A DNA stretch of 64,000 bases, from IMG/VR virus record IMGVR_UViG_3300042907_001080, positions 62,001 to 126,000 of that record; one strand, 5' to 3'. Below, piece after piece: positions 590 to 20,169 of the stretch (position 1 is its first letter; each line of letters opens with the position of its first letter). The position numbers and the translations under genes are program-made. Under the pieces are notes generated by a model. It was given only the letters and a program-made list of their open reading frames with translations, was not told the origin of the DNA and ran no database searches.

Positions 590-595
590 AATCAG

Positions 596-629
596 TATTT
601 ATGAAATAATTCCGTTGCTCTCTTAAATA
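596..629. promoter_or_regulatory. divergent late-promoter pair (ATAAATA on minus 596-602; TTAAATA on plus 623-629)
   Basis: TAAATA cores upstream of both divergent genes. Confidence 0.5.
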
Positions 630-656
630 GCATAGCTCGTATAAAAGGACAACAAT

Positions 657-1286: not shown

Positions 1287-1287
1287 T

Positions 1288-4019: not shown

Positions 4020-4027
4020 TTCCGGAA

Positions 4028-4456
4028 TTAATCAGACAATGTGACATTGCCTTGCTGTTTGGCTCCACCAGGTTGATGCAACCACAGATCTTTATCGTCT
4101 ACCCAGGTTTCTTTTACAGCAACTATCATTCCTACTTCTTTGGCTCTGCGATATGCAGCCTGCATGGAACCTGGGCCGTAAAAACATTCAATATTGCCAG
4201 GTTTTGCCTGTATCCATTTTCCTGTGACAATATAAAATTCAGCATAGGGCAGATATGCAGCATATAACCCTATGCCTCCGGTTTTGTAGCAAATCTGTTC
4301 CCAGATTTCCACATCCTCGATCCTCATTTCTCTATCATATTTCCAATCCACAGTTGGTGGCGCATAAGGAACATCATGATCCATCCAATTCTCATTGAAC
4401 AATTCATCTTCCCAAGGCGCTGTGAATATGTCTCGATTGGTTTTAAAAATTGCCAT
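4028..4456 (-). CDS. hypothetical protein, paralogue of 245..589
   Basis: Shared WE.I....G.IG.YAA..PY.EFY motif; TAATG-coupled to the upstream gene. Confidence 0.8.
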   Translation of the reverse strand: MAIFKTNRDIFTAPWEDELFNENWMDHDVPYAPPTVDWKYDREMRIEDVEIWEQICYKTGGIGLYAAYLPYAEFYIVTGKWIQAKPGNIECFYGPGSMQAAYRRAKEVGMIVAVKETWVDDKDLWLHQPGGAKQQGNVTLSD

Positions 4457-5400
4457 TAGTTAGGATACCTTACTACCACTAGGCCGCTGGCACCGTATCC
4501 CGAACCTGCACCCCAGCCAATGTTTGGAGCCCAGTATGAGCCTGCGCCGCCGCCTGATCCGGAATTAGCTGTATAGGCATGAGTTACTCCCCATCCTCCG
4601 CGAGGATCTTGACTGTATGAATAGTAGCTGTAGCCCCAATTTGGAGTAGATCCGTGACCTCTACCGCCACCGCTGGCTCCATCTCCACCTGGTTCTGAGC
4701 TGTTACCACCACCACCACCACCACCTGCTCGAGCTAATGCAGAGCCAGTGATTGAGCTGCTGGTACCAAGTCCACCTTGATGATTCTGACCGGCTTGACT
4801 GGACCCACCACCGCCACCGCCCGACCAAGTATATGTGTATGGACTACCTGGAAACCCTTGACCCGGTTGGCTCGAACCGGCGCCGTAGCCGTAGGCTGCT
4901 CCGCCACCACTTCCACCGTATTGGCCGGCTGAGCCATGATAATAGCCGCCGTAACCTCCATAGATGCCCTGTATAGGTCCAAGATTACTAGAAGCGCCAT
5001 TTGCACCGCCATTGTAAGGTTGAGGTCCACCACCTGTGCCAACTGTAACTGGCGTCGTGCCTGTTGTCAGGGGTGTGGTGCCTGATAGGTATCCTCCGGC
5101 ACCGCCGCCACCATTGCCGTTGGTGCTGTATCCCTGGCCGCCGCTGCCGCCACCGCCAATAACTAGATACTCCACAGTTATACCAGCGGCGGTATTCACC
5201 AAATTCATTGCTGAATTTTTGTATTGGTCTTTGACTTTGACATTTAGCTGATGATCTCCCACGGTGGTAAACATGTGAATGGTATAGCCGCCAGCAGTGT
5301 ATACTTTATCACCGCCAGTGATTTCATAGATAGATTCCGAAATTGCTTTTTCGGGCTGTTGAATATTTGATTGACTTCTTATTGTGCTGATAAAAGGCAT
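4456..5400 (-). CDS. glycine-rich virion/tail-fibre-associated protein
   Basis: TGG...GGYTIH.FT, VEYLVIGGGGSGG, GGGGAGG, C-terminal G.SG.VVVRYP, typical of phage glycine-rich domains. SD AGGAG. Confidence 0.8.
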   Translation of the reverse strand: MPFISTIRSQSNIQQPEKAISESIYEITGGDKVYTAGGYTIHMFTTVGDHQLNVKVKDQYKNSAMNLVNTAAGITVEYLVIGGGGSGGQGYSTNGNGGGGAGGYLSGTTPLTTGTTPVTVGTGGGPQPYNGGANGASSNLGPIQGIYGGYGGYYHGSAGQYGGSGGGAAYGYGAGSSQPGQGFPGSPYTYTWSGGGGGGSSQAGQNHQGGLGTSSSITGSALARAGGGGGGGNSSEPGGDGASGGGRGHGSTPNWGYSYYSYSQDPRGGWGVTHAYTANSGSGGGAGSYWAPNIGWGAGSGYGASGLVVVRYPN

Positions 5401-5415
5401 ATATTTCTCCTATGC

Positions 5416-6318
5416 TTACGATATAATAAAACTTTGGGCACCAGTTGATGTAAACTGATGAAGTTTATATCCGGCGGGTGTTGTGACTGTACCACCAGTG
5501 GCGCTAACGGAACCAGTGACCAAGGTGTGAACTACCAACCAGGTGTCTGTGCTGCGTTTTCTACAAAATAATTGTTCGTTAGCATTCATAGCCCCAGTAC
5601 CAGTATTTCCTGTGAGTGTGACTCCAGCACCTGCTGTGAGAGCTACACTACCCGTGTTGATTCTAGCTATGCTGATCACTGTGCCTATGGGATACGCCAC
5701 ACTGCTATTGGGAGGTATGGTTATAGTTGCTGAGCTGGTGTTGTTCATGGTAACAACTTTTCCAGCGTCTTCTAATACACAGGTATAACTGCTTGTCTGC
5801 ACATTTTCTACTTGGAGACTTGTAGCCAGTCCTGCTACTCTTAACTCAGTGACACTTAATGTTCCTGTGCTGGGCTGGAAAGTCAATTTTGAAGAACTAC
5901 GTCTCACTGAGGTGATAGTAGTATCTGTAGTAGATGTAGTCAACGTCACAAAGTGAGATGCAGCATCAGAGGTATTATCCGTTAAAGATAATCCGGCAGT
6001 GGCCCAACTTAACACACCTGATCCATTAGTTGATAACAACTGTGTGTTTGTGCCGTCTGTACCGGGCAGTGTCCAGGTTACATTTGATGAGACTGTAGCT
6101 GGGCCTTGAAACGCCACCCAGTTTGAACTATCTGAATCTGCAAATCGAAGATCCCCCTGAGCCTGTAGCTGTGCATCACCAGCTATTTTAAATATGCCAG
6201 TGCCGGCAGGATCTATGGTAATGTCCAGATCGTCAGCAGCAGTTAGGGTGGTGTTATCTATATTAAAACCACCAACTCCTGAGCCGCCTGCTGTTCCTGC
6301 TGTATGTTTTCTACCCAT
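5416..6318 (-). CDS. tail fibre-like structural protein
   Basis: LRF.DSDSSN.V.F..PATV.SN.T.TLP..DG...Q.L.TNGSG.LSW fibre motif; TITIPPNSSVAYPIGT domain; C-terminal ATGGTVTT..GYK.H.FTS.G. Confidence 0.75.
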   Translation of the reverse strand: MGRKHTAGTAGGSGVGGFNIDNTTLTAADDLDITIDPAGTGIFKIAGDAQLQAQGDLRFADSDSSNWVAFQGPATVSSNVTWTLPGTDGTNTQLLSTNGSGVLSWATAGLSLTDNTSDAASHFVTLTTSTTDTTITSVRRSSSKLTFQPSTGTLSVTELRVAGLATSLQVENVQTSSYTCVLEDAGKVVTMNNTSSATITIPPNSSVAYPIGTVISIARINTGSVALTAGAGVTLTGNTGTGAMNANEQLFCRKRSTDTWLVVHTLVTGSVSATGGTVTTPAGYKLHQFTSTGAQSFIIS

Positions 6319-6331
6319 GGTATTCTCCTAG

Positions 6332-6652
6332 TTAGGCCGTTGCAGTTTCAATGCCATAGACCACTGCATTGACACCAGTAGCACTGGAACGAACTACCAG
6401 TAATTTTGCTGCATCCATAACAATACCGGTGCGTTCTAACACACCTTTAGGAGATAGACTCACGTCATATTCCAGCCATTCAGCGTCAGTGGGTGACGCA
6501 GAACTTGCTAGTGCTATTCGTATCAGTGCTGCACTTGCACCACGATTTACCACACTGACTGTTGCCACTGTGAATGTTGTAGCAGGCACTGTATACAGTG
6601 TTGTCAGCGTGACTGCTGATAAATCTGCGGTTCCTAATCTTCCTGTTGCCAT
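6332..6652 (-). CDS. small virion structural protein (paralogue of 20558..20890 and 23900..24301)
   Basis: T.LYTVPA......VSV.N...; C-terminal G.E; beta-rich. SD GGAG and TAAATA (6673-6678) upstream. Confidence 0.75.
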   Translation of the reverse strand: MATGRLGTADLSAVTLTTLYTVPATTFTVATVSVVNRGASAALIRIALASSASPTDAEWLEYDVSLSPKGVLERTGIVMDAAKLLVVRSSATGVNAVVYGIETATA

Positions 6653-6675
6653 AATTTATTTCTCCATGTATATAT

Positions 6676-9600
6676 TTAGTTCAAAAAGTAGTTGAATGCC
6701 AGGGGAACTCCGGTAACTCCGCCTCTGAATTCAAAATTAGCATTTATTTTAATTGGGCCGCCAGTAGTAGTAGTTATAATGTTAGAACTAATAAACACAC
6801 TACCTGCTGTGATAGAGTTCACGTTCAAACTTGCACCACCACCTCCAATTTGGCCCGCAATATAAGCTTTGATTGCTCGCTGTGTGGGCACAATATTATC
6901 CGAATCTGCTGTAAAGAATGGATCTGTTGAAAATTCAGTGATTGTAGCTGAACCGCCGCCTAGTGTTACGTTGCCCAAGTTAAGTTCTTGCAGTCCGCTA
7001 ATGTTAAATGCATCTGCATTCAGTGTAGCAATACCAGTGCTTTGCTCGATAGCAAACAGATCACCAACACGGAAGTTACCGTCTTGGTCTGTGGAGGTAA
7101 AGAACACTCGACCTCCTCCGTTGTCCACAGCTTCGTTGGCAGGAATAGCAGGTTGATTAGGCGCACCGGGATAATTAGTGTCAATGAAACTGCCTGTGCC
7201 TATGTCCAAGAAATCGTGTCCAGTTAATCTAACCTGACTGTATCTAATCCTAGTTTCAACACTAACTCCGTCTGCCGGAGCTTCTGATCTTGTCAGTTGT
7301 GGGCTAATTTGGAAGAATGCTGTGTAAGCACCCTCGTTTTCACCCAAGAATGTGATCACGTTGACCAACTTAAAAGTTCTGTCAGGTAGATGACTGAACA
7401 CCACGTTGGCTCCGGGCACTGGTTGAATGCTGATTCTTCTCAGCGCCACAAACGAACCAGGTTGGAATAGGTTGGAATAACCATCACCTATGTCTACTTC
7501 ACCGCTACCTGTGACATAACCCGATCCTCTGTTAACAAAACTAGGATTAGCTAACACACCGCTGCCGGTTCTCACGGTCACGGGGGATTCAAATGTGTTA
7601 TTAGGATCAGTGAATGTAATTGTTGGCGCCGAGGCATATCCCGATCCAGGCTCTGTGATATTAACCTGGAACAGTTTGTCAGCAGCCACTTTAGCACGAC
7701 CTCTAGCAGTGGCTCCGGTTCTAATATAAGTGGCCACTGTGCCTGTGCTGCCACCTACACCTACAAACAGGCCGTAGCGATTTCTATTACCAAAAGTGAT
7801 TGCTGAGAAACCGCTAGCTGCCGTAGAAGTAGTTCTAGTGGTCCATGTTACTCCGTCTGGCGATGTTGCTGCTGCTGTAGTTGTGCTCACGGCAAGGAAT
7901 ACTCCCTGACCGTATGTAACTTTGGTCCACGATGCTGTAGCTGGTAATGTGCTAGATGACCAAGTTATACCGTCTAAACTATAGGCAGCAACAGTGCCGC
8001 TGGTGCTCGAAATAGCAACAAATCTGTTGTTACCATAGGCGATACTGTTCCAGTTTGACGAACTCGGCAATGTGCCTGCAGTCCATGTTCCTGTAACTGT
8101 GGTTGATGTGGCATGATTGGTAACATTAGTGCCGCTCTTAATTGCAACAAATCTATTTTTACCGTAGGCTATGGCTGTGAATCCAGTCGTGGTCAATGTG
8201 CCTGTCTGATCCCATGTTTCGCCGTCATTGCTGATTCTCACTGTGGTTACATCGCTGCTGACTGCCACAAATTTCTGTGCACCGAAGGCCACATCGACCC
8301 ATACCGCAGAAGTCTGCATGCTGGTTGCTGACCAGGTAATACCGTCACTACTGTATGCTCCGGTAGTATTTGCACTTGTGCCTGCTACTGCTACGAATTT
8401 GCTGACCTTGCCCACTGTGGAATTGTCGTCAAACAGACCGGCGGCCATTGCAGACCAGTTCGCTCCGCTTGGCATCAAGCTAGTTTGTGAAGTCCAATTA
8501 ACGCCATCTTCTGATGTTGCACCAGCGGTAACTCCATTGCGTAGAGCTACATATCTGCCACCTATGCCGTAACCTGAGTGATCAAAATCTAAGATAGCAC
8601 CTGTGGTAGAATTCACTGCGGTAATAGTAATTATTAAATCGTTGGCAGGAGTTGTGCCGCCTAGACTATTACCTAAAATTGTTATGGTTTCTAGTCTGGT
8701 ATATCCTGTGCCTGCGCTCTGTGTTGATGGTGTATATTTCCATCCATTGCGTATCACGGTGAATGTGGCTCCTACTCCTGTGCCTGTATATGTGCCTGTG
8801 ACTGTAGTATACACCGCAGCAGTTTCGCCATATTTCACTGCTGTCCAGGCTCCGCTGGTTGGCAGAGTGGCAGCTGTGCTGGTGTATCCAGGCGCTGAGA
8901 ACGTTACTCTAGGTTCAATGATATATGTCGAAGAAGCATCTGGAGATATAATTGCTGTGCCTGCTACTAAATGATCAAAACCTGCTGTACCGTCGGATTC
9001 TTTGATCAGCCCAGCTACTTTTGTACCTGAATTATATGTGGTGATAATACCAAACTGACCAACACCTGCGCCACCTGTGAGCACTATCTTCATGCCTATG
9101 TAAGCAGAACTAGATTCGCCGTCTGTGGCAGCTATGGTTACAGAAGTCAATGTTCCACCTTGGGCAGTGTTGGAGTTTGTGATATAACCAAATCCGCCAA
9201 GATTTCCCTCAGCCTCAGGAGCATTAGTGCTGTCGTCAATTAGGTCTAACATTCGAACTTCAAACACAGCGTCATCACGGAATTCATCTGCTTCGACTAT
9301 AGCTCCGGAGCCGCCGCCGGTGAGTGTATAAGTGACTTCTGTATAGTCAATACCTGCATTTGTGAATTCTAATTGCACCAATGCTGATCCGTCAGTGATA
9401 ACACGATCGATCTCTGCGTCAAATTGCAGTCTATTATCAACTATGGCTGTGCCGGCAGTTTCAGAGTTGTCAACCCCTTCTGCTACAGAACCAAAATCTC
9501 CGTATGAATTGTTGCCGTTTGTTCCGCGGATACGTCCGCCATTTTCAGCCAAATATCCAATGTGAGCATAGTAAGTAAACACTGAAACAAGTTCAGCACG

Positions 9601-12600
9601 ACCGTTGTTAGTAATCCAAGCACCGATACCATCTGATATTACCTGGGTGAAGTCGTTGCTAACTATAGAATCATTACCACCGTTGTGCAGTGAGCCATCA
9701 ATCTTTTGACCTACAGCCGCTGTGCCCAATGTGGTCAACCCCTGCACATATGGTGAACGTGTTATAATCCATGTACGATAATCCTCTGGCCCCCATCCTG
9801 GATCCAACGAAGCATATGCTCCTGCACTTACTCTAGAAGTACCGAATTCATTTTCTGCTAACAGATCACCAGTAAGTCCTTCGAGTGTTTGATCTCTTAG
9901 ACCTGTGGCATCCCTGAGATAATACATGTCTTCTTCTAAACTGCCTGTTACACTATTTGCATAGTATCTAGCTGCGTATCTAGATTTGTAGTTGCCTGGA
10001 TATTTCAAATCATATTTTAGCGCATCGATATAAGTGCCAACATCTCGCAGGCACGATGCACTATTGTAATACAATGCTACTGTCATAGATCCGGTGGCAT
10101 TTGATGCAATATTAAATGCTGTGTTTGAATCTCTAGTTGTAGCAATTTTAAAAGTTGTTGAACTTACAACGTTTTGTATATAGTAGGTAGTGTCTGTGCT
10201 AATTCCGCCAAATGCAGTTCCTGTAAATCTTACTGCTGTATTACGTTTCATCCAGGAAGTGCTAGTGCAGGTAAACACATCTGTGGCTGCTGTGGCATTA
10301 GTTACTGTAGTTGTATATGTTGAATCGATGTAAGCATCAATCTCTGCAACTATATAATCTCTATTTCTCTCTAATTGCAGCACAGCATAGTCAATCATTC
10401 TGTTGCCTGTGGCACAACGACTGCCTTCATTAGTGGCACCGTAAAGGATATCATCTACTAAGGTCATTAGTGTTTCAATACGAGCCTGTGCAGTTGCGTT
10501 ACCGCCCACATTGGCCAGTGCTTCTGTTTTGGCATTAGTTAATGCGTCTCTAGTAATGGTTTTTTGATTACCTACAAATACCTCTGCTGCTGAAGCTCTT
10601 AGATATGAGTATGCTGCTTCTCTAGATTTGAAGTTGCTGTTGAACATAAAGTCAAACATCACAGCTTCTAGAATCAATCGAGTATCTCTAATACACTTGG
10701 TTTGTAGATATCGAATCTTAGGAGTAACACCATCAGTTTTGTATGCACTTGGGAATATCGCAGTAAAGGAAGTACCACCTGACGATAGGCAAGATACAGT
10801 AATACTTGTTATGTTAACAATGTCGCCTGCTGCTAATCCGTGTGTTGCAGTAGTCACTACCGCATATCCTGTAGAGTTATTATAGACAAAGTTACTAACT
10901 GCTAACTCTGTTCCATTGGATTTCGTTACTATTCCACCACTGACATAGGTGTGTGCGAGAGTATGCTTACCAACGTAGATTCTAAAATCTGTCGAGGTCA
11001 ACGAAGTTTCGTCTACTACAAAGTCAGTGTGCCATGCTACTGCATTTAGATCATCTACAACATTTTGGACAATGGTTTCTTGTGCAGCGTCTAATGTCAC
11101 CGCAGCAGCAATCAAAGCAGTTGTTGATGTCACGGCATTGGTAGCAGTAGGATAGTCTATAACTTCTACAGGTATGCTAATACCAGCACCGTTGGTAAAT
11201 GTAGTTAACACTGCGCCGCCATATGTAGCTGCCAGTTGGAATGTGTTAGTGTTTACTGTGCCTACTACCCAATATTTGACACCGTTGGTTAACCCGTTGC
11301 CAGTTTCTCTTGGAACAACTGCATCTCCTACACTTAATCCATGACTGTTGCTGGTAAGTGTGTCTGTACCAGATATTGTAGTAACTGTGATCTGTGGTGT
11401 TGTGGCTTCTGTGCTATCACCTTGTATGATGTTAGTGATGATGTCTACCAATGCACCTACTGTAGCGTTAGCTGCTGCTCCACCCGTTAAATTAGTGCTG
11501 TCGGTCCATTGAGTAGCAGTGTTGCCTGTGGATTTTGTTACTGTGGTATTGGCAATGATCTGTTGCACAATAGTTTTTAGTCTACCGTAGGCAGCTGCCG
11601 TTGCGGCGATTTCTGTGCTGTCAATTTGCAGTGCCGAGCTGTTATCTCCGTCAAAGTAGGCTGTGCCGGCTACTAGTGTAGCCCAGGTTCCGCCATAGGT
11701 CAAATCATAGCTCATAGCATCAACAATAAATGCTACATCACGCTTGCATTTGGTTCTACTAAATTTTAATGTGCTATAATTTTCATTTAAGAACGCTGTG
11801 ATTTCGTCTTTGATAAATTCTTTGTTTTCAATCAGCAGCGTTCTTGCATCACCAAATCCTGATAAGAATGAACTATTATATCCTGTAGGATCTGCGGAAC
11901 TCACCATGAATGTGGAACTGATCTTGAAATCAATTTGATGCTGCATGACTCTGACCAATTGTGCTGCATCTGCTGCTTCTTCGGTGCTGGCATATGGAAA
12001 TGACGCACTTTGAATTGCAGTGTTACCTGAGCTTTCTGTAACGTTGGCTCCTCGAACAATTTGGTCAACCACTGTTTGCAGTCTAGTCAATGCTCCTATG
12101 CTGTAGCCTGCATCGGATCTGTTGGTCAGGCTACCTGCAGGACCTGCGTTGGTTGAGCGTAATTCGTCACCTTGTATACAGGTCTGTTCTGGCACAATAA
12201 TAGGTAATGTTTCTCTATACTGTCCGGTAGCCACTTGGATCAAATTACTAGGACTACGTCTTGCCGGCACACTAGCTATGGCGGCTGCTATCTGAGGTGC
12301 TGTAACCGCTGCTGCTCTAGCTGTGATAGCATTTGTGATCAGTGTAACACTTGCTGTCACATTAGCCAATGCTCCAGATTCTGCTGTGAGATCGCTGTTG
12401 AAATATTGAGCTACTGTGGCAGTAGAGTTGTCGCCGTTCAGTGTCTGATAATTTATTGTTGGAGCTGTCTGTGCTAAAACATTTCCAACAACTGTGAGCA
12501 TGTAGTTGTAGGCAGCAACGGATTCGTCTGATTCAATTGCTAAGCCTGGATATGCTTCTGTTTCGCCTTCGCTGAGTCCGCCGATTAGAGAATTAGCAAC

Positions 12601-14520
12601 TCCGCGTGATTTAATATTACCACCATGGCATAGATCATAGGTTACCGCATCTAGTGTAAATCCTACATCTCGTTCGCATTTGAAATCATCGTAGACAAAT
12701 CCGGAAGTAAATGGTGCAATGTTGTTAGTAATTTGATTCTGAATAAATTCTGTGACTTCGCGTTGAATGAACACACGATTTAATTCCAACAAATATCGTG
12801 CATCGGGATTGCGAGGACCACGTTCTACCTGTTCGCAAGCATAGCGAATAGTTTTCCAAGGTTTGTCCCAGGTTCTACCGTGTATTGGTGATGGTAGATC
12901 AGTGCCTGTAGTTGCTACAAAATAGGTGTGATCTATTTCGCCTAGAGTGACCCATGCTGGATCGATGCCTGTGGAGGTTAATACCTGGCCTTCACGGCCG
13001 ATTGGTAGTCTCTGAGGCCCGTTACCGCCATAAAAGACTAGATCGCCGCGCACTGATAACACACTGGTTTCTGTGCCGACGTTTAGAATATTCCAATATG
13101 TTCCTGTGTTGTCTTGATCAGGTCTGCTGTTAGCTTGTCCACCACCTGCTGCACCTACAGTAGAACCGTCATCACCTTCTGATCTATGTGCCAATACGCA
13201 GATAAAGGCGTTAGCACCAAATCTTACGGCATCACCTAACACATATTCTCTGTCATCTGACCACTCTCCCTGCCAGCTGATACCAGCGTTGAGTCTTGAC
13301 CAGTATGTAGCATTAGGTGGTTCTGCTGATACAGTGGCAGACATTGTGCCTGCAGCATCTGCAGTGATGTCGAAGGTTGTGCCACCTGGTGTTGTACTCA
13401 CTGTGATATTGCCTGCTGCTACAGTTTTTACATAGTATCTAGCTGTGGTAAACACATTACCAAATGTTGTTCCAGTAAATCTTACTGCCATGCCTACTGC
13501 CATACCTACTGTCGAAGCTATAGTAAATGTATCTGTAGCCGCTGTGACTGCTGTAACAGTGTAAGTGTTTGAAGGAGAATCCTGTAAGGCCAAATAGGTA
13601 TAGCCACCCATACTAACTACTTCACCAATTTTATAAGAAGTGCCGGCTGCCCACACAGATTGAAATTTAAATCCTTCTGTATAGAGGTCCCATCTTGATG
13701 ACTGTGTTGGTGGTGTTTCAGAAGCAACTGCGGCAGTATGAATCGTTTTTGCTATGTATTGATTACCGCCATATCTAACAATGTCGCCGTGCTGATACAG
13801 AGTTGCATTGTTCCATGTATCTTCATACTCTGTGCCTTCTACAAATTGACTCCAACGCCCTGCTGTAGAATCTGTTAAAAATGCAGCGTCTGCGGTATGC
13901 TGTGTGACACAGATCCACAGGCCGGCACCATATTTTACCACATCATTGACTTTGTATCTGGTTACAGAAGCTACCCAATCACCTTTATATTCTATGCCAG
14001 GATTAAATGAATCCCATTTAGCCTGGTCTTGTTCTAATCCGGATGCAGCGGTAGCTGCAGAAGTATGGTGAAGATTACACACATAGGTATAACCTCCATA
14101 CTGCACTAGATCATTTACTTTGTAGCGAGTGGATACTGTCCAATCGTTTTTCCAATCTAATCCTTCTGCATACAAAGTCCACTTGGATTGATCATTTTCT
14201 AAGCCTGACGCTGTGGTAGCTGCTGAAGTGTGACTGTCATTACAAATATAAAGCAACCCGCCGTATTTGACCACGTCGTTGAGTTTGTAGAAAGTGCTAA
14301 CATTCCAGTCCCCGGTCCAGCTTTGACCGTCGCTCATCTGATTCCATTTGGTTGGACTGTATTCTAAATCTGTGTTGAAATCTGAAGCAGAAGTATGTCC
14401 CACTGCACAGATATAGGTGCGAGCACCATACCTTACCACATCATCAATATAATAAGTGGTAGATGGGGTCCATGTGTTTTTCCAAACAAATCTAATTCTA
14501 CCTAGTTTAAATTCTGCCAT
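6676..14520 (-). CDS. giant tail-fibre/virion structural protein (2614 aa)
   Basis: N-terminal W..T.Y...D.V.YGG..Y.C...HTS repeats (CBM5/12-like), CxRD helical repeats, S.DG..W propeller-like repeats, C-terminal RLTGHDFLDIGTG / GGRVFFTSTDQ.GNFR. SD GGAG and TAAATA at 14539-14544. Confidence 0.85.
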   Translation of the reverse strand: MAEFKLGRIRFVWKNTWTPSTTYYIDDVVRYGARTYICAVGHTSASDFNTDLEYSPTKWNQMSDGQSWTGDWNVSTFYKLNDVVKYGGLLYICNDSHTSAATTASGLENDQSKWTLYAEGLDWKNDWTVSTRYKVNDLVQYGGYTYVCNLHHTSAATAASGLEQDQAKWDSFNPGIEYKGDWVASVTRYKVNDVVKYGAGLWICVTQHTADAAFLTDSTAGRWSQFVEGTEYEDTWNNATLYQHGDIVRYGGNQYIAKTIHTAAVASETPPTQSSRWDLYTEGFKFQSVWAAGTSYKIGEVVSMGGYTYLALQDSPSNTYTVTAVTAATDTFTIASTVGMAVGMAVRFTGTTFGNVFTTARYYVKTVAAGNITVSTTPGGTTFDITADAAGTMSATVSAEPPNATYWSRLNAGISWQGEWSDDREYVLGDAVRFGANAFICVLAHRSEGDDGSTVGAAGGGQANSRPDQDNTGTYWNILNVGTETSVLSVRGDLVFYGGNGPQRLPIGREGQVLTSTGIDPAWVTLGEIDHTYFVATTGTDLPSPIHGRTWDKPWKTIRYACEQVERGPRNPDARYLLELNRVFIQREVTEFIQNQITNNIAPFTSGFVYDDFKCERDVGFTLDAVTYDLCHGGNIKSRGVANSLIGGLSEGETEAYPGLAIESDESVAAYNYMLTVVGNVLAQTAPTINYQTLNGDNSTATVAQYFNSDLTAESGALANVTASVTLITNAITARAAAVTAPQIAAAIASVPARRSPSNLIQVATGQYRETLPIIVPEQTCIQGDELRSTNAGPAGSLTNRSDAGYSIGALTRLQTVVDQIVRGANVTESSGNTAIQSASFPYASTEEAADAAQLVRVMQHQIDFKISSTFMVSSADPTGYNSSFLSGFGDARTLLIENKEFIKDEITAFLNENYSTLKFSRTKCKRDVAFIVDAMSYDLTYGGTWATLVAGTAYFDGDNSSALQIDSTEIAATAAAYGRLKTIVQQIIANTTVTKSTGNTATQWTDSTNLTGGAAANATVGALVDIITNIIQGDSTEATTPQITVTTISGTDTLTSNSHGLSVGDAVVPRETGNGLTNGVKYWVVGTVNTNTFQLAATYGGAVLTTFTNGAGISIPVEVIDYPTATNAVTSTTALIAAAVTLDAAQETIVQNVVDDLNAVAWHTDFVVDETSLTSTDFRIYVGKHTLAHTYVSGGIVTKSNGTELAVSNFVYNNSTGYAVVTTATHGLAAGDIVNITSITVSCLSSGGTSFTAIFPSAYKTDGVTPKIRYLQTKCIRDTRLILEAVMFDFMFNSNFKSREAAYSYLRASAAEVFVGNQKTITRDALTNAKTEALANVGGNATAQARIETLMTLVDDILYGATNEGSRCATGNRMIDYAVLQLERNRDYIVAEIDAYIDSTYTTTVTNATAATDVFTCTSTSWMKRNTAVRFTGTAFGGISTDTTYYIQNVVSSTTFKIATTRDSNTAFNIASNATGSMTVALYYNSASCLRDVGTYIDALKYDLKYPGNYKSRYAARYYANSVTGSLEEDMYYLRDATGLRDQTLEGLTGDLLAENEFGTSRVSAGAYASLDPGWGPEDYRTWIITRSPYVQGLTTLGTAAVGQKIDGSLHNGGNDSIVSNDFTQVISDGIGAWITNNGRAELVSVFTYYAHIGYLAENGGRIRGTNGNNSYGDFGSVAEGVDNSETAGTAIVDNRLQFDAEIDRVITDGSALVQLEFTNAGIDYTEVTYTLTGGGSGAIVEADEFRDDAVFEVRMLDLIDDSTNAPEAEGNLGGFGYITNSNTAQGGTLTSVTIAATDGESSSAYIGMKIVLTGGAGVGQFGIITTYNSGTKVAGLIKESDGTAGFDHLVAGTAIISPDASSTYIIEPRVTFSAPGYTSTAATLPTSGAWTAVKYGETAAVYTTVTGTYTGTGVGATFTVIRNGWKYTPSTQSAGTGYTRLETITILGNSLGGTTPANDLIITITAVNSTTGAILDFDHSGYGIGGRYVALRNGVTAGATSEDGVNWTSQTSLMPSGANWSAMAAGLFDDNSTVGKVSKFVAVAGTSANTTGAYSSDGITWSATSMQTSAVWVDVAFGAQKFVAVSSDVTTVRISNDGETWDQTGTLTTTGFTAIAYGKNRFVAIKSGTNVTNHATSTTVTGTWTAGTLPSSSNWNSIAYGNNRFVAISSTSGTVAAYSLDGITWSSSTLPATASWTKVTYGQGVFLAVSTTTAAATSPDGVTWTTRTTSTAASGFSAITFGNRNRYGLFVGVGGSTGTVATYIRTGATARGRAKVAADKLFQVNITEPGSGYASAPTITFTDPNNTFESPVTVRTGSGVLANPSFVNRGSGYVTGSGEVDIGDGYSNLFQPGSFVALRRISIQPVPGANVVFSHLPDRTFKLVNVITFLGENEGAYTAFFQISPQLTRSEAPADGVSVETRIRYSQVRLTGHDFLDIGTGSFIDTNYPGAPNQPAIPANEAVDNGGGRVFFTSTDQDGNFRVGDLFAIEQSTGIATLNADAFNISGLQELNLGNVTLGGGSATITEFSTDPFFTADSDNIVPTQRAIKAYIAGQIGGGGASLNVNSITAGSVFISSNIITTTTGGPIKINANFEFRGGVTGVPLAFNYFLN

Positions 14521-14553: not shown

Positions 14554-17500
14554 TTACTTGAACGATCTGTAAAACATTGTCTGGGCCAACATGCTGCCAC
14601 TTATTCCTGAATTTGCCATGTTAAATTCCGCTAATACCGGCACAATAACACGTAGTCCTGCAGTGTTATTGATTCTATCAGGTCCTACTAACACAGTTCC
14701 TGCTATAAAACTGCCTACTGCAATTTCCGACCCCCCTACGCTGAGTCTATTTGCTAGATAAGCAGCTATGGCTCTTTGGGTTGGGACAATGTTATTAGAA
14801 TCTGCTATGAACAACGGATCAGTAGAAAATTCTCTAACTACTGCGCCAGTTCCACCAATTCTAATTCCACCGAGTCGCAGTTCAGTGAGTCCAGAAAGAT
14901 CAAAGAAATCAGAACTAATTGTCACAGTTCCTGTGGATTGTTCAACTGCAAACAACTCGCCTGCTCTAAAGTTACCACTTTGATCTGTTGAGGTATAAAA
15001 CACTCTACCTCGATCTTCTTCTACTATTTCATTAAAAGGCTGTGGTTCATAAAATCCACTGTATAATTCTGGATAATTAGTTTCTTCAAAATTGCCTGTG
15101 CCTATGTCTAAGAAATCATGACCTGTAATTCTGCACTGGCTGAATCGTGTTCTAATAGTTATTTCTGTGAGATGTTGTAAATTATCACGAGCTTTAATTT
15201 CTGGTGTTACACGTATTCTTGCTGCCAGCCCTCTGTCTGTGAGACCTAGTTCTTCGATGGTCACAAGAGTGTATGATCCGCTGAGTCCTGAAATTACTAA
15301 ATTTGCTCCAGGTCCTGGATATGCATCTAAATCGTTGATAACAATAAATTTTCCAGTGGGAATCACATCTGCAAATCCGTCACCAGATACGGTTACTCTA
15401 GTAGATAGTGTTCTATATCCTAGTCCCCGATTCAGCCAACTTGGCTGTGCTAATACTCCGTCTCCAGTGCGGCATTCAATTTTTGCATCTCTATTGTTGT
15501 TGGGATCGACAAATGTGCAGGTAGGCCCTTCGGTATATCCGGATCCTGGATCCCATAATTTCACACCGCTTATTACTCCACTAGCGATTGTCACACGCCC
15601 TAATGCTCTTGCACCAGTTTGTATCTTGTTAAATTTATTTGAATTATCAATAGCGATCCATGTAGGTGTATTGTTTCCTACTGTGGAGTCTCTAAGATCT
15701 ACGTACGGAGTGCCAAATGCCACTGACTGCCATGACTGTATACTAGCTAGTGTTCTTGAGGTCCATACAACACCGTCAAAACTGGTTGCTGCAAAATTAG
15801 TGAGACCCGACGTTGGATCATTACCGACTGTTCTAAATCCGGTGTCTCCCACTGCAAAGAACACACCTTGTGCATATCTAATTTTTTTCCAGTTGTGTGC
15901 GGTGCTGCCATCTTGTGACGGCATAACAGCAGGCAACCAATCATTGCCATCGAAGCTGTAGGCAACATCGCCTGTGCTGGAAATTGCAACAAATCTACCG
16001 TTGCCGTAGGCAATGCTGACCCAATCTTTGGCGCTGGAGTCTGCGACCACATCCATGATATGGCCTGTCCATGACCATGTGTTTAATGTGCTGTTATATG
16101 TGCCTACTGCCACGATGTTTCCACTGTTGGCTAATGCCACATATCTCTGCTTGCCATAGGCCGCGTCCACCCATTCGTTTAGTGTAGAATCGCCGAATGA
16201 GGGTAACACCAGTGAACTCCAGGTAGTGCCATTGAGACTGTAGGCTGCTGAGTTAGAGTCTGTGGCCACAGCAATAAATAAACCGCCACCGTAGATACAG
16301 GAATTCCATTGGCGAGATGCTGGCATGCTTCTTGTGATCCAATTTATGCCATCTGTAGAACTTGCTGCTACTGCGCTGCCTTTTCGAATTGCTACAAATA
16401 AATGATTACCTAATGTTGGATAAGTTACTCTGCCTGCTGCTAGACATTTCCAATCACCTACAGTAGGCATATTGAATGTAGTCCAGTTGGTGCCATCTGA
16501 ACTATACATAGCAGCACTACCGGCAGTAGATACCACCACAAATCTACCGCTGGCTGCTAGATTGTCTTCTCCTGTGCCGTAGGTCTTTTGTTGTGCGGAC
16601 AGTATAGAATTTGTGCTGTCATCACTAACATCAGTAACTAAAATTAATAAATCGTTGATCGGTGTAGCTCCACCTATAAGGTTACCGTCTATGGTTAGTA
16701 GCTGTCCAGCCTCATATCCTGCACCTGCATTGTTGATAGTCAGTGTGTAATTTCTACCTTGTTTCACTATGTCAAACGTAGCTAACGCAGCAACAATATC
16801 TATAGTAGTGCCAGTGCCTGATTCATTAACCGCTATGTTTGTATAAGTTTCAGTAGTGTCACCAAACACAATTTCTGACCATGTTGTAGTAGCAGGAGTT
16901 GTAATTTCTTGGGCTGAGTACACCGGAGCAGAAAATATTACTCTAGGTTCTATTCTATATGTGGTGTTGGTCAACAACGGAACTGTGACTGGTTTTCCAG
17001 GCACCACATGATCCCAGCCCGGTTGATCATCGGATTCTCTAGCCACACTCATCACTTTAGTGACGTTATCATATGCAGTAATATACCCATACTGTCCTGT
17101 GCCTGCACCGCTGGTAAGAATTATCCGCATGCCAAGATATTCTGCGATAGAGTTGGCATCATTGGTGGCTATGGTAATTGTTGTTGCATCGCCACCTTGT
17201 GCATTGTTCTGTACTACTACATAACCACTGCCGCCAATTTCTTGTGCTATTTGAGTGGTGCCGGCATTGACATCAAGTCGTCGTGCTTCAAACACAGCAT
17301 CATCTCTGAACTCTTCAAAAACCACACTGGCATTGACGCCAGCACCAGCAAACGTTGCAGTAGCCGAGGTATAATCCTGACCCATATTTGCCCATTCTAA
17401 AATCTGTATTTCGTCAACAAAATCTCCAGCAAAAGCTGCTGCCACAATGGCCTGTTGAGCTCTGGTATAGTTCCTTGCTATGACTGGTGTTTCTGAGGCA

Positions 17501-20169
17501 TCGATGCCGTCTGCGATGGCGCCATACGTACCATAAGAACAGTTGCCGTTTGTGGCTCGTATAACACCACCGTCTTCGGCAAAATATCCAATATGACAAT
17601 AATATGTGAACACCGAAACCAATTCTGCTCGACCGTTATTACGCACCCAAGCTCCGATTCCGTCACTTAAGACCTGTGTGAAGTCGTTGCTAACAATAGA
17701 TCTATTGCCTCCGTTGTGCAGAGCACCGTCGATCTTTTGTCCAACACAGCCTGTGCCTATGGTAGTAACACCTTGAATATAAGGAGATCGAGTAGTGATC
17801 CAGGTACTATTATCGTTTGGTCCCCATCCTGGATCCAGCGACACATAGGCACCTCCCAGCGGTATCTGATATAGATCAAAGGCCACAGGCGGATTCAGGG
17901 TTGATTCTAATCCCTTCAAAGTGCAGTTGCGTATTCCGGTAGCATTTCTCACATAGAACATGTCTTCGGTATTTGTGCATCCTAGTATTTGATTTCTATA
18001 ATATCTTGCTGTTAACAAAGATTTGTAATTGCCTGTATATATGATATCATATTTCCAAGCATCTACATATCCACGAATACTGTGTCGCAGCATATCCGCA
18101 TCAAAATCATATGTAGGATATGTGGCCTGCATGTAGGCCACAGCTTCTGCAATGATAAAATTCTTGTTGGCTTCTAACACCAACACAGTATTGGTGTATG
18201 CTGTAGAAGTCTGTGCAGTATTAGTGCCTACTACTGCAGGATTTGAACCAGAACTGTTTACATAAAAATTGATGTAGGAAATTATATCTGTGATTTTGTT
18301 TTGTATTGCCACAGCAGCAGCACTGCTGGTAGTGATAGGCTGAATAACTGTGTTTAGTATCTCATTTAGCGGATTCTCAGGGTCAAATATTGGTGGGTTA
18401 AATGATACTTGAATCGATTCTGTCAAAATCACTTGATTCAAAGAATTACCCACAGATTTCGCTGGACTGATTGGAGTTCCTGCTATAATCGCTTGTATTA
18501 TTCCGGAAATTCTATTTAACACAGCTATATGTCGTGTGCGATCTGTAGCCGATAGCACTGGGCTCGATGGCTTTATTGTTGTGCTACGAAGTTCAGCACC
18601 TAGTATCACTGTTTTAGGTGGCACAATAATCGGAGTTAATTCCGTGTATTCACCTACAGCAACCTTGATGGTGGTATGTCCATTGTAGCCATCATTAACC
18701 TGTTCACAGGCAAATCTAATAGTTTTCCAAGGCAAGAATTGACTGGTGCCTCTTTCTGGATTGGTGTAATCATCGACACCTGTAGGATCCACGTATCTTA
18801 CTCTAGCTAGATCTCCCCAGTATGCGTAGTCAATACTGCTTTCTTGATTTGCTATAACAACTTGATTTTCTAATCCAACCGGAACACTAGTGAGACCAAA
18901 CGTGCTGCCGTCACCTACGATTGATCTTGAAAGGTCAAAGGTTAATAAATCCCCACGCTGCGACATTCCTATTTCTGAACCTGCCTGAAGCACGAGATCC
19001 CAATAATTTATACCCTCGCCGTTATCTCCCGGAAAATTAGCATTGGCAGCAATGTGTTCAACTGTGGCCTTATAGGTATTGCCTTTAAATACCACAAGTT
19101 CATTAAGACTATACGATGCACCTACAATCCAACTACCTCTAAATGTTTGAGCCACATTAACCAGTTCCCAATTACTGGAATCTAAATAATCCAAAGAACT
19201 GCCATCATTTACTGTATCAGCTATCGCTGTGTATAGATTTCCTCCACGACGAACTACATCTCCAACTTTATAATCTGTATCTGCACTCCATGTGCCCATA
19301 AAATCAGTGGCTTTTGATAGTACCTTCCAATTTACAGTGTCTTCGGTGATACTAGAACTGTTGGTATGATTGGTAACGGAGATATATAGATATCCTCCAT
19401 ATCTTACTATGTCGCCAATGGCGTAATAAACTGCATTGCTCCAGTTTTGATAAAAATTAAATCCAGAAAATTCTGTAACAAAATTTTCATTGGTGATATT
19501 AGATCCTGCAACATGTCCTGTAACACAACGTAAAATACTACCACCATATTTTACAAGGTCGTTGCGTCTGTATCTAGTAGTAGCAGTCCATGTTCCTTTA
19601 TATTCTATACCTTCGTAGTATATTTGCCATAATTCCCCGGCACTGTCGTCTTCGGTATCATTGTTTCCTATTTCTAAACCCAAATTTGTAGTAGATGAAG
19701 TGTGACCTATAATACATCTGTAAACAATACCGTTGTATCTAACAATGTCTCCAATACCGTATCTAGTAGCTGGCGTCCATGCTGATCTCCAATTGTCTGT
19801 TGATAGATATACAGCCCAATTTATTAAACTAGTGTCGAATATTGCTACAGACGTGTGGCTGGTAATACAAATATAGATAACACCACCATACAGTGCTAGA
19901 TCACCTGGATTGTATAGAGTTGTAGGATTCCAATTTCCGCGCCATGCATATCCGTCGGTCATCTTAATCCAGGCCGGAGTCGGTTGAGTGTCTCCAGGAT
20001 TACTATAGTAATTTTGGTCACCCGCAAAAGTGGATGCTGTGTGTTGTCTTTGGCATATCCAAGTGCTGCCTCCATACCTCACCACATCATCTTTAAAATA
20101 CGTAGTTGAATCAGCTGCCCATTCATTCTTCCACGTATATCTAATTCTACTGATCTTAAATTCTGCCAT
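14554..20169 (-). CDS. giant tail-fibre/virion structural protein (1871 aa), paralogue of 6676..14520
   Basis: Same N-terminus (MAEFK..RIR..WKN.W), same SLDPGWGP...WI.TRSPY.QG and SIVSNDFTQV.SDGIGAW blocks, same C-terminal domain. Confidence 0.85.
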   Translation of the reverse strand: MAEFKISRIRYTWKNEWAADSTTYFKDDVVRYGGSTWICQRQHTASTFAGDQNYYSNPGDTQPTPAWIKMTDGYAWRGNWNPTTLYNPGDLALYGGVIYICITSHTSVAIFDTSLINWAVYLSTDNWRSAWTPATRYGIGDIVRYNGIVYRCIIGHTSSTTNLGLEIGNNDTEDDSAGELWQIYYEGIEYKGTWTATTRYRRNDLVKYGGSILRCVTGHVAGSNITNENFVTEFSGFNFYQNWSNAVYYAIGDIVRYGGYLYISVTNHTNSSSITEDTVNWKVLSKATDFMGTWSADTDYKVGDVVRRGGNLYTAIADTVNDGSSLDYLDSSNWELVNVAQTFRGSWIVGASYSLNELVVFKGNTYKATVEHIAANANFPGDNGEGINYWDLVLQAGSEIGMSQRGDLLTFDLSRSIVGDGSTFGLTSVPVGLENQVVIANQESSIDYAYWGDLARVRYVDPTGVDDYTNPERGTSQFLPWKTIRFACEQVNDGYNGHTTIKVAVGEYTELTPIIVPPKTVILGAELRSTTIKPSSPVLSATDRTRHIAVLNRISGIIQAIIAGTPISPAKSVGNSLNQVILTESIQVSFNPPIFDPENPLNEILNTVIQPITTSSAAAVAIQNKITDIISYINFYVNSSGSNPAVVGTNTAQTSTAYTNTVLVLEANKNFIIAEAVAYMQATYPTYDFDADMLRHSIRGYVDAWKYDIIYTGNYKSLLTARYYRNQILGCTNTEDMFYVRNATGIRNCTLKGLESTLNPPVAFDLYQIPLGGAYVSLDPGWGPNDNSTWITTRSPYIQGVTTIGTGCVGQKIDGALHNGGNRSIVSNDFTQVLSDGIGAWVRNNGRAELVSVFTYYCHIGYFAEDGGVIRATNGNCSYGTYGAIADGIDASETPVIARNYTRAQQAIVAAAFAGDFVDEIQILEWANMGQDYTSATATFAGAGVNASVVFEEFRDDAVFEARRLDVNAGTTQIAQEIGGSGYVVVQNNAQGGDATTITIATNDANSIAEYLGMRIILTSGAGTGQYGYITAYDNVTKVMSVARESDDQPGWDHVVPGKPVTVPLLTNTTYRIEPRVIFSAPVYSAQEITTPATTTWSEIVFGDTTETYTNIAVNESGTGTTIDIVAALATFDIVKQGRNYTLTINNAGAGYEAGQLLTIDGNLIGGATPINDLLILVTDVSDDSTNSILSAQQKTYGTGEDNLAASGRFVVVSTAGSAAMYSSDGTNWTTFNMPTVGDWKCLAAGRVTYPTLGNHLFVAIRKGSAVAASSTDGINWITRSMPASRQWNSCIYGGGLFIAVATDSNSAAYSLNGTTWSSLVLPSFGDSTLNEWVDAAYGKQRYVALANSGNIVAVGTYNSTLNTWSWTGHIMDVVADSSAKDWVSIAYGNGRFVAISSTGDVAYSFDGNDWLPAVMPSQDGSTAHNWKKIRYAQGVFFAVGDTGFRTVGNDPTSGLTNFAATSFDGVVWTSRTLASIQSWQSVAFGTPYVDLRDSTVGNNTPTWIAIDNSNKFNKIQTGARALGRVTIASGVISGVKLWDPGSGYTEGPTCTFVDPNNNRDAKIECRTGDGVLAQPSWLNRGLGYRTLSTRVTVSGDGFADVIPTGKFIVINDLDAYPGPGANLVISGLSGSYTLVTIEELGLTDRGLAARIRVTPEIKARDNLQHLTEITIRTRFSQCRITGHDFLDIGTGNFEETNYPELYSGFYEPQPFNEIVEEDRGRVFYTSTDQSGNFRAGELFAVEQSTGTVTISSDFFDLSGLTELRLGGIRIGGTGAVVREFSTDPLFIADSNNIVPTQRAIAAYLANRLSVGGSEIAVGSFIAGTVLVGPDRINNTAGLRVIVPVLAEFNMANSGISGSMLAQTMFYRSFK

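Follow-up and report, generated by a model that had tools for sequence, protein, structure and literature searches.

Phycobiliprotein-like modules with a conserved Cys-x-Arg-Asp motif in a giant tail-fibre protein of an uncultured lake jumbo phage

A giant fibre ORF with four Cys-x-Arg-Asp motifs

The window analysed here, a 64,000-nucleotide stretch (positions 62,001 to 126,000) of the IMG/VR record IMGVR_UViG_3300042907_001080, contains at positions 6676-14520 (minus strand) an ORF of 2614 aa (P0001) with the characteristics of a virion fibre or tailspike protein, followed at 14554-20169 (minus strand) by a paralogous fibre ORF of 1871 aa (P0002). The domain order of P0001 consists of N-terminal CBM5/12-like repeats (seven Pfam CBM_5_12 matches), a beta-helix cap, the modules described below, a beta-helix body, BNR-type repeats and a C-terminal domain. 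P0001 is similar to the PHROG tail-fibre families 9851, 5342, 4527 and 17885, P0002 matches the same PHROG and Pfam families, and the neighbouring genes encode the portal, protease, major head protein, and baseplate hub and wedge, indicating a position within the virion structural gene block. A megablast search of the region against phage records returned no match.

The original prediction had pointed to four C-x-R-D helical repeats in this protein, and this observation is confirmed by the present analysis. The four segments lie at aa 614-634, 924-944, 1275-1295 and 1489-1509, corresponding to window positions 12619-12681 (a start placed 3 nt away in the original prediction), 11689-11751, 10636-10698 and 9994-10056, and they contain the only C.RD motifs among the 15 Cys residues of the protein. 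The number expected from composition is 0.032 per protein (Poisson P(>=4)=4e-8), while 5000 shuffled sequences gave at most 2 motifs. Furthermore, in 121 homologues of 63-100% identity the Cys is retained in 115/119, 120/121, 120/121 and 121/121 sequences, respectively, and Arg and Asp in at least 116. The helix that had been proposed to precede each motif is present for all four copies, although it is adjacent to the C.RD helix only in repeats 1 and 2, whereas in repeats 3 and 4 the two helices are separated by inserted beta domains of about 95 and 80 aa.

A family HMM, together with AlphaFold2 (AF2) secondary structure, was used to delimit the modules, which are helical and approximately 150 aa in length. 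Repeat 1 (aa 573-747, window 12280-12804, minus strand) is a complete module (HMM positions 12-168, E=1e-32), with CERD at aa 615-618 (12667-12678). It is followed, after a beta-helix rung segment, by an additional C-terminal half-module without a C.RD motif at aa 805-866 (11923-12108, minus strand; HMM positions 93-156, E=7e-7). Repeat 2 (aa 880-1058, 11347-11883, minus strand) is also complete (HMM positions 1-179, E=1e-60), with CKRD at aa 925-928 (11737-11748). Repeat 3 (aa 1133-1365, 10426-11124, minus strand; HMM positions 37-142, E=1e-20) is a complete module split by a beta domain (aa 1161-1256, 10753-11040) inserted between helix B (1134-1158) and the C.RD helix, with further helices spanning 1273-1365 and CIRD at aa 1276-1279 (10684-10695). 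On the other hand, repeat 4 (aa 1371-1524, 9949-10410, minus strand) is only a half-module, matching HMM positions 10-44 and 38-81, and is composed of helix B, an inserted beta domain (aa 1403-1483, 10072-10314) resembling the Uba1 FCCH domain at Z 8.8, the C.RD helix with CLRD at aa 1490-1493 (10042-10053), and one further helix (AF2 helices at 1371-1401, 1487-1506 and 1511-1524). Repeat 4 runs directly into the beta-helix, although the model of aa 1100-1700 had a pLDDT below 50 beyond aa 1510 and does not show how the two are joined. The paralogue carries, as had been predicted, a single half-module lacking the Cys (aa 651-727, 17989-18219, minus strand; HMM positions 3-79, E=5e-18), which also lacks the Arg and Asp and occupies the same place before the beta-helix as repeat 4.

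Predicted fold and relationship to phycobiliproteins

A profile of 148 diverse copies, with repeat 2 as the modelled module, gave an AF2 model with six helices, a pLDDT of 89.7 and a pTM of 0.84. All 50 top Foldseek hits in the PDB are phycobiliproteins, and VIA superposition yielded Z scores of 15-16.7, with the best at Z 16.7 and rmsd 2.4-2.7 Å over 138-142 residues, covering residues 25-177 of the subunits. In an exhaustive search of 48,161 representative PDB chains the top 8 are phycobiliproteins or ApcE (Z 15.3-12.4), followed by sensor globins and photocobilins (Z about 11), RsbR (Z 9-10) and, lastly, haemoglobins (Z 6-8). Repeat 3 superposes across its insertion at Z 14 (rmsd 2.2-2.5 Å over 122-125 residues, against phycobiliprotein beta residues 34-172). 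That the predicted fold might prove not to be globin-like had been named in advance as grounds for abandoning the idea, and this was not what was found. The module corresponds to a globin-type core (helices A, B, E, F', F, G and H), while nothing equivalent to residues 1-24, i.e., the N-terminal X/Y hairpin that forms the alpha-beta protomer, is present.

Sequence comparisons point in the same direction. A search of PDB sequences with the module profile found almost only phycocyanin alpha chains (31 of 34 hits, best E=8e-4), and the alignment, which spans phycocyanin alpha residues 38-104, places C.RD on Cys84/Arg86/Asp87 and the preceding helix on helix B, with a Gly-Gly after the motif also being shared. 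Neither P0001 nor P0002 matches Pfam Phycobilisome (PF00502) at E<=1, and a search of the whole genome gave no hit at E<=10, yet this model exceeds its gathering score of 22.2 bits in relatives, namely P0126 (50.1 bits), P0127 (30.4 bits) and the S-RSM4 short tail fibre SRSM4_214 (57 bits). P0131 scores 20.6 bits, S-PM2 p091 gives no hit, and six of 148 single modules hit PF00502 on their own. Other searches were set aside: a single-sequence phmmer search of aa 540-1560 against the PDB found nothing relevant, a protein-atlas feature search with repeat 2 gave no usable hit, an ESM-Atlas fold search retrieved only a protoglobin cluster at TM 0.54, and AlphaFold DB clusters gave only weak globin-type hits (E>=0.04).

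It could be argued that the resemblance is convergent or due to chance, reflecting a generic helical bundle that happens to contain C.RD, since individual E-values are modest (best Foldseek E of 4e-3 and best PDB profile E of 8e-4) and helical models can reach Z of about 13-14 by chance with the superposition method used. This view appears very improbable, because independent lines agree: the motif, the helix-B match and the fold are in the same register, PF00502 is matched in three relatives, and the ranking of phycobiliproteins is followed by an orderly series of other globin families. The proposed interpretation of these repeats as phycobiliprotein-like globin domains inside a virion fibre protein is therefore supported, with the caveats that its chromophore part has not been assayed, that the bilin genes expected under it are absent from this genome (see below) and that repeat 4 is only a half-domain. 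It had also been assumed that the finding was an isolated oddity, whereas it represents a very large repeat family.

Several known systems are comparable. Phycobiliprotein subunits such as C-phycocyanin alpha and phycoerythrin beta share the core and the motif, at about 14-20% identity, but the module lacks their alpha-beta dimer interface, has additional near-invariant Asp60 and Tyr76, and occurs as 1-31 tandem copies within virion proteins of 2,000-6,000 aa rather than as subunits of 160-180 aa. The PB domain of the core-membrane linker ApcE is likewise embedded in a large multidomain protein and has an insertion between helices B and E, as in repeats 3 and 4; it is the top match of repeat 3 (ApcE chains at Z 13.5-14.5) and scores Z 13.9 for repeat 2. 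ApcE attaches bilin autocatalytically, but has a single PB domain followed by linker repeats, is intracellular in the phycobilisome core, and has its Cys at a different position. The bilin biosynthesis-associated globins BBAG-1 and BBAG-3 are phycobiliprotein paralogues outside light harvesting which carry CXRD, the bilin-binding motif that they share with phycobiliproteins, and bind bilin without lyases (Rockwell et al. 2023, PMC10151467). BBAGs are single-domain cellular proteins defined by clustering with heme oxygenase (HO) and pre-PcyA genes, no such genes accompany the modules here, and the modules were not placed phylogenetically against them.

Distribution and conservation of the module

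The module is one of the commonest building blocks of giant fibre proteins in aquatic phages, with about 1,470 copies in 150 representative proteins. It is strung 15-31 times in giant proteins of related aquatic phages and occurs 3-9 times per genome in marine cyanomyoviruses. Among 50,697 cultured phage records only cyanophages have it (198/198 and 66/66 records with the module), while bacterial genomes were not surveyed. The cyanomyovirus carriers include giant proteins annotated as tail fiber, short tail fiber or gp7 (S-PM2 p091, S-RSM4 SRSM4_214, S-CAM1, S-CAM4, S-RIM32 and P-HM2 gp7), with 2-7 motif-bearing modules in each protein examined, mostly with KCxRDIGY. In six cultured cyanophage proteins 27 of 30 modules have the triad, typically as KC[KR]RD[IL]GY. 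Their identity to the window protein is only about 25-35%, and these are T4-like cyanophages of 180-200 kb, whereas the window phage is a jumbo phage of about 350 kb. No paper describing the module was found, and in the papers that could be searched these cyanophage proteins are not described as phycobiliprotein-like.

Of 1470 modules at about 25-30% identity, 93% have the Cys, 94% the Arg and 98% the Asp, and 90% have the full triad. Asp60 (99%) and Tyr76 (98%), which are not phycobiliprotein features, are more conserved than the Cys. Of the 102 modules that lack Cys, most have a small residue (Thr, Ala or Ser) in its place and 63 keep Arg-Asp. Modules without the triad coexist in the window genome, i.e., the P0002 copy and 2 of 3 modules in a third protein of 2485 aa, which shows that the fold can work without the triad.

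The search for heme oxygenase, bilin reductase and CpcT-type genes elsewhere in the genome, which had been put forward as a means of examining the chromophore hypothesis, gave a negative result: no HO, ferredoxin-dependent bilin reductase (FDBR), CpeT/CpcT or CpeS/CpcS was found in the 281,658-bp record, which is estimated to be 80% complete. The cyanophage markers psbA/psbD, hli and nblA are also absent, so that the attempt to identify the window phage as a cyanophage was not successful. Its DNA comes from lake-water metagenomes and its capsid protein is closest to those of jumbo phages of Proteobacteria; the host, which has not been identified, may thus have little or no bilin. Among 39 module-bearing IMG/VR contigs of at least 45 kb, only one carries HO plus a bilin reductase, about 118 kb from the module gene, and none carries a lyase. 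Bilin and lyase genes and cyanophage markers are lacking in 38 of these 39 related jumbo contigs.

Possible roles of the modules

The four motifs are best explained as marking true phycobiliprotein-family globin domains that have been recruited as serial modules of a fibre/tailspike protein, between the N-terminal CBM5/12-like repeats and the beta-helix body, with extra beta domains in the B-E loop of two of them and half-modules capping the beta-helix. As the same module is strung 15-31 times in giant proteins of related aquatic phages and 3-9 times per genome in marine cyanomyoviruses, its basic job in this view is to build an elongated, bead-like fibre segment. As the Cys-x-Arg-Asp triad of helix E is kept under strong selection, with Cys preferred specifically over any small residue, the reading favoured here, albeit tentatively, is that the modules are not inert and that each would carry a linear tetrapyrrole, thioether-linked to the Cys, held by the Arg and Asp, and picked up in the host cytoplasm during assembly without a phage lyase, as in ApcE and the BBAGs, making the fibre a chromoprotein. 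The motif, the repeat family, the predicted fold, the profile-level homology, the conservation and the structural-gene context are shown by the analyses presented above, whereas display on the virion, ligand binding, autocatalysis and any light-related function are inferences. Bound chromophore was not measured and the pocket of the model was not inspected. Moreover, most phycobiliprotein sites need lyases, and P-SSM2, which is reported to encode bilin reductases (PMC2984593), has no module.

An almost equally plausible alternative is that a phycobiliprotein/globin domain was captured once and is now only a stable, repeatable brick of the fibre, in which Cys, Arg, Asp, Asp60 and Tyr76 form a buried polar and packing network or an inter-module contact without any chromophore. 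The prominence of Asp60 and Tyr76, the small residues that replace the Cys, the occurrence of triad-less modules and half-modules in the same proteins, the absence of bilin and lyase genes and of cyanophage markers from this genome and from 38 of 39 related jumbo contigs, and the confident AF2 folding of the module without a ligand are consistent with this possibility. However, a position that only requires a small residue should drift among Ala, Ser, Gly and Thr, whereas Cys is held at 93% across divergent repeats, in a putatively extracellular protein and without a partner Cys in the module. In addition, the three conserved residues are exactly those that contact bilin in every characterised family of this fold. 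A disulfide role was set aside because each module has a single conserved Cys with no partner.

It is also conceivable, although unlikely, that the pocket is functional with a different chemistry, in which the Cys, with Asp49 and other polar residues, would bind a metal ion or another cofactor such as heme or a flavin, or act in redox or covalent cross-linking that stabilises the assembled fibre. A lone, highly conserved Cys accompanied by conserved polar residues (Asn20, Tyr41, Asp49, Asp55, Asp60, Asn66, Tyr76, Thr95 and Gln125) would fit this view, as would the heme sensor globins and B12/bilin photocobilins being the nearest non-phycobiliprotein structural neighbours, and phage fibres often use axial metal sites (T4 gp37 and gp12). 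Nevertheless, no heme-ligating His is conserved in the profile, and no precedent was found for CXRD in this fold doing anything other than binding bilin. Prediction of a homotrimer of the module returned a score of 0.00 without an answer, which speaks neither for nor against trimerisation. Finally, the protein may not be exposed on the virion, being instead internal, involved in assembly or embedded in the baseplate, in which case any light- or host-facing role would be moot. In some cyanophages the modules lie in proteins annotated as gp7 baseplate wedge (P-HM2), and no proteomic or imaging data exist for the window phage, but this seems very unlikely given the tail-fibre family matches, the carbohydrate-binding-type N-terminal repeats, the beta-helix and BNR repeats typical of fibres and tailspikes, and the adjacent paralogue.

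Phycobiliproteins are regarded as light-harvesting proteins of cyanobacteria, red algae and cryptophytes, and non-photosynthetic relatives, the BBAGs, were found only recently (PMC10151467). The finding of this fold with its pigment-binding triad intact as a repeat of phage fibres, including those of well-studied cyanophages such as S-PM2, S-RSM4 and P-HM2, implies that, if the modules bind bilin, virions would be chromoproteins, providing a concrete molecular candidate for light-dependent phage adsorption and a possible sink for phage-encoded bilin genes, both of which are open questions that become testable with simple assays. If they do not, this is still a clear case of a host light-harvesting or globin fold being captured and massively amplified as a viral structural repeat, and it would provide a lyase-independent, tandem-repeat scaffold of interest for protein engineering.

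A more far-reaching possibility, which is considered unlikely but is not excluded, is that the modules are bilin-bearing photoreceptor or antenna units on the virion. Cyanomyovirus fibres would carry covalently bound phycoerythrobilin or phycocyanobilin, and light-driven changes in the modules would gate attachment. The window phage would then be either an unrecognised cyanophage or a phage that uses host biliverdin. Such a mechanism would explain the long-known but unexplained light-dependent adsorption of S-PM2 and P-HM1/P-HM2, reportedly independent of host photosynthesis (Jia et al. 2010, as relayed by citing papers), and would give a purpose to the phage-encoded ho1, pebS, pcyA and cpeT genes (for the phage CpeT, Gasper et al. 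2017, likewise as cited), whose benefit has been called unclear. Consistent with this, S-PM2 and P-HM2, which are reported not to adsorb in the dark, have 9 and 5 modules, respectively, whereas P-SSM2 and P-SSP7, which reportedly do, have none. In addition, cpeT lies 0.3-1.8 kb upstream of the module-bearing giant fibre gene in four cyanophage genera.

The C.RD motifs and the repeat family they mark

The window contains a 2614-aa ORF (6676-14520, minus strand; designated P0001) and, next to it, a 1871-aa paralogue (14554-20169, minus strand; P0002). The original prediction had placed four phycobiliprotein-like CxRD repeats in the larger protein, and this observation was confirmed, as all four of the sequence stretches on which it rested are present, at aa 614-634, 924-944, 1275-1295 and 1489-1509, corresponding to window positions 12619-12681, 11689-11751, 10636-10698 and 9994-10056. 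These stretches contain the only four C.RD motifs among the 15 Cys residues of the protein, whereas its composition predicts 0.032 such motifs per protein (Poisson P(>=4)=4e-8) and 5000 shuffles never gave more than 2. Furthermore, in 121 homologues of 63-100% identity the Cys, Arg and Asp are almost invariant at all four sites. The statement that the paralogue carries a single degenerate copy without Cys was likewise found to be correct.

A search of 1.84 billion representative proteins with aa 540-1560 of P0001 returned 1002 hits, many of which are giant proteins with up to 36 matched stretches. These proteins carry C.RD at a period of about 140-160 aa, with 31 motifs in the protein designated P0123 (5984 aa), 29 in P0124, 28 in P0125, 18 in P0126 and 22 in P0127. 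An HMM iterated on these proteins is 180 positions long and finds 1668 module hits in 150 proteins. In P0001 this HMM identifies full modules at aa 573-747 and 880-1058, a C-terminal half-module at aa 805-866, a module at aa 1267-1369 whose first helices lie upstream of an insertion, and a split half-module at aa 1376-1410 plus 1482-1525, while in P0002 it identifies a half-module at aa 651-727. Conservation across about 1470 modules is 93% for Cys46, 94% for Arg48, 98% for Asp49, 99% for Asp60, 98% for Tyr76, 86% for Thr95, 82% for Tyr41, 81% for Asn66 and 77% for Asn20, and the full C-x-R-D is present in 90% of modules. Where Cys is missing it is mostly replaced by Thr, Ala or Ser, and 63 of those 102 modules keep Arg-Asp.

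Sequence and predicted-fold relationship to phycobiliproteins

At the level of the individual proteins, Pfam finds only CBM_5_12 repeats in P0001 and P0002, with no hit to PF00502 at E<=1. On the other hand, the family-level evidence is different. A 43-column profile of the motif region returned phycocyanin alpha chains at the Cys84 site as 24 of its 26 PDB hits, although only at E>=0.33, while the full 148-module profile returned 34 PDB sequences at E<=1, of which 31 are phycobiliproteins (best E=8e-4). The latter alignment covers phycocyanin alpha residues 38-104, such that the helix preceding the motif aligns with helix B and C-x-R-D aligns with Cys84-x-Arg86-Asp87. In addition, PF00502 exceeds its gathering score (22.2 bits) in P0126 (50.1 bits, best stretch on profile positions 72-152), in P0127 (30.4 bits, profile positions 33-138) and in the 4482-aa 'short tail fiber protein' of the cultured cyanophage S-RSM4 (SRSM4_214; 57 bits), and six of 148 single modules match PF00502 on their own. 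No description of phycobiliprotein-like domains in phage fibres was found in a search of about 8.4 million papers and preprints that addressed phages, cyanophage tail fibres and virions, S-RSM4 included, although automatic database annotation probably already flags some of these proteins, given that the S-RSM4 protein passes the PF00502 threshold. The similarity is thus latent in databases but apparently not discussed, and what is new is a virion-borne, tandem-repeat branch of the already known phycobiliprotein/globin family.

AlphaFold2 modelling on the 148-module alignment, with repeat 2 as the target, gave a pLDDT of 89.7 and a pTM of 0.84, with six helices and with the motif at the start of the third long helix. 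A predicted fold that is not globin-like had been specified in advance as grounds for rejecting the proposed relationship, but all 50 best Foldseek PDB hits of this model are phycobiliproteins (E from 4e-3, TM 0.5-0.58). VIA-align gives Z up to 16.7 and an rmsd of 2.4-2.7 Å over 138-142 residues, model residues 1-154 matching subunit residues of about 25-177, which is the globin core without the X/Y hairpin. A Foldseek-independent search of 48,161 representative chains ranks phycobiliproteins and ApcE first to eighth (Z 15.3-12.4), followed by globin-coupled sensors and photocobilins (Z about 10-12), RsbR-type non-heme globins (Z 9-10.5) and haemoglobins (Z 6-8), an order that matches the published family relationships of bilin-binding globins (PMC10151467). 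A second model, of aa 1100-1700 (pLDDT 62.6; reliable for aa 1130-1509), shows that repeat 3 is a complete domain with a beta domain of about 95 aa between helix B and the motif helix. This repeat superposes on phycobiliproteins at Z 14 and an rmsd of 2.2-2.5 Å, its top hit being ApcE, which has its own loop insertion at that site. Repeat 4 has helix B, an inserted beta domain, the motif helix and one more helix, after which the chain enters the beta-helix, which was not modelled. The beta domain inserted in repeat 4 (aa 1403-1483; window 10072-10314, minus strand) superposes on the FCCH domain of ubiquitin-activating enzyme E1 (Z 8.6-8.8, about 74 residues), and similar small beta domains occur elsewhere in the protein, for example at aa about 340-400.

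Architecture, genomic context and distribution of the modules

Direct reading of the sequence shows a DUF1565-like beta-helix cap just before repeat 1 (DUF1565 is seen in relatives) and a beta-helix rung between repeat 1 and the half-module, while the main beta-helix follows repeat 4. The modules are therefore inserted at the N-terminal end of a tailspike-like beta-helix, preceded by seven CBM5/12-like repeats and followed by BNR-type repeats. Both fibre paralogues start with seven such CBM_5_12-type (chitin/carbohydrate-binding-like) repeats of the pattern W..Y..GD.V.Y.G..Y.C...H (window 13111-14520 and about 18760-20169, minus strand), and each of the first four or five repeats contains one Cys. 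Repeated S-x-D-G-x-x-W (BNR/Asp-box) motifs at window about 7900-8650 (minus strand; P0001 aa about 1960-2200) suggest a beta-propeller in the distal half of the fibre, and Pfam BNR (PF02012) is recorded for some homologues. PHROG hits are to tail-fibre families, and neighbouring genes encode the portal, prohead protease, major head protein, baseplate hub, baseplate wedge and a further giant virion protein. The latter (PHROG 10938; window 52475-64000, plus strand, running off the window; 4605 aa in the genome, at 114475-128292 of the viral record, G000:C1) lies immediately after the baseplate wedge gene and has neither a C.RD motif nor a module. SbcC- and SbcD-like nuclease genes (window 39255-42040, minus strand) lie between the head-gene and baseplate-gene blocks. 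The G+C content rises from 0.369 in window 1-4000 to 0.471 in window 4001-8000, that is, between the short plus-strand ORFs at the window start and the distal part of the fibre gene, and the fibre genes are the most G+C-rich part of the window.

The window is part of a 281,658-bp IMG/VR record estimated to be 80% complete, which is present in 23 lake-water metagenome runs from 2020-2025. Its major head protein is 67-72% identical to those of jumbo phages of Sinorhizobium, Vibrio, Pseudomonas (PA5oct) and enterobacteria, and a cluster of 27 tRNA genes within about 6 kb outside the window (G000:C1, 265947-272161), plus one tRNA-Glu at 160.5 kb (28 in all), is typical of jumbo phages. A third module-bearing protein of 2485 aa is encoded outside the window (G000:C1, 208835-216292, minus strand); of its three modules only one has the motif (CSRD), while the other two have lost Cys, Arg and Asp but keep the later conserved Asp. 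A search of the genome for heme oxygenase, bilin reductase and lyase genes, which had been put forward beforehand as a check on the bilin hypothesis, was negative, as no heme oxygenase, bilin reductase, CpeT or CpeS was found, nor were psbA/psbD, hli or nblA.

A degenerate DNA pattern for the motif hit more than 120 IMG/VR contigs. Of the 39 such contigs of at least 45 kb, most are rated 12-35% complete, which implies genomes of about 350 kb, and none of the 39 has psbA, nblA, CpeT or CpeS. One complete 190-kb contig without psbA (G034, the contig of locus L082; 64271-65453 and 182943-183869) carries adjacent heme oxygenase and ferredoxin-dependent bilin reductase genes together with a protein (979-aa open frame) with two modules, and it is the only one of the 39 that combines the two features. 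In contrast, among 50,697 cultured phage records every tblastn match is a cyanophage, 66/66 with the window region and 198/198 with eight modules of P0125. The module links the window phage to cyanophages, but nothing else does, and its host is therefore unknown. S-PM2 p091 has five C.RD modules, and in six cyanophage proteins 27 of 30 modules have the triad, usually as KC[KR]RD[IL]GY.

Possible roles of the conserved triad

The interpretation of the repeats as phycobiliprotein-like domains is well supported, and homology to phycobiliproteins is held with high confidence, whereas the suggestion that they may bind a tetrapyrrole covalently is an inference and can be favoured only tentatively. 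As tandem units of about 150 aa in proteins of 2,000-6,000 aa, the modules must first of all build an extended fibre segment, and the open question is why the bilin-binding triad is kept. CXRD is the chromophore-binding motif of phycobiliproteins and of BBAG-1/-3, and those BBAGs bind bilins without lyases (PMC10151467), while a lone Cys held at 93% in highly divergent extracellular repeats argues for chemistry rather than packing. Covalent bilin binding, acquired in the host cell, is therefore the preferred reading, although at less than even confidence. An apo structural module is only slightly less likely, being supported by the even higher conservation of the non-phycobiliprotein residues Asp60 and Tyr76, by the triad-less modules in the same genome and by the absence of bilin genes in the jumbo phages. 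Other uses of the Cys, such as binding of a metal or other cofactor or cross-linking, are considered unlikely alternatives.

Possible leads, which are inference only, come from the cyanophages. Light-dependent adsorption of S-PM2, P-HM1 and P-HM2 has been documented and does not depend on host photosynthesis. Profile searches of whole records find 9 modules in S-PM2 and 5 in P-HM2, three weak ones in P-SSM4, and none in P-SSM2 or P-SSP7, both of which adsorb in the dark, although this comparison rests on four phages with a known phenotype and phylogeny is a confounder. P-SSM2 is reported to encode bilin reductases yet has no module, which argues against a strict link. The bilin-lyase gene cpeT lies 0.3-1.8 kb upstream of the giant module-bearing 'short tail fiber' gene, on the same strand, in S-CAM4 (locus L002, 4457-4981), S-RSM4 (L003, 4430-4954), S-RIM32 (L004, 3551-4084) and S-CAM1 (L005, 6704-7240). 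Gene order is generally conserved in these phages, and T-type lyases are described as serving the Cys153 site rather than Cys84, so that this adjacency is only a lead. Between cpeT and the fibre gene lie only tRNA genes and at most one small ORF, encoding an HNH endonuclease or a 2OG-Fe(II) oxygenase.
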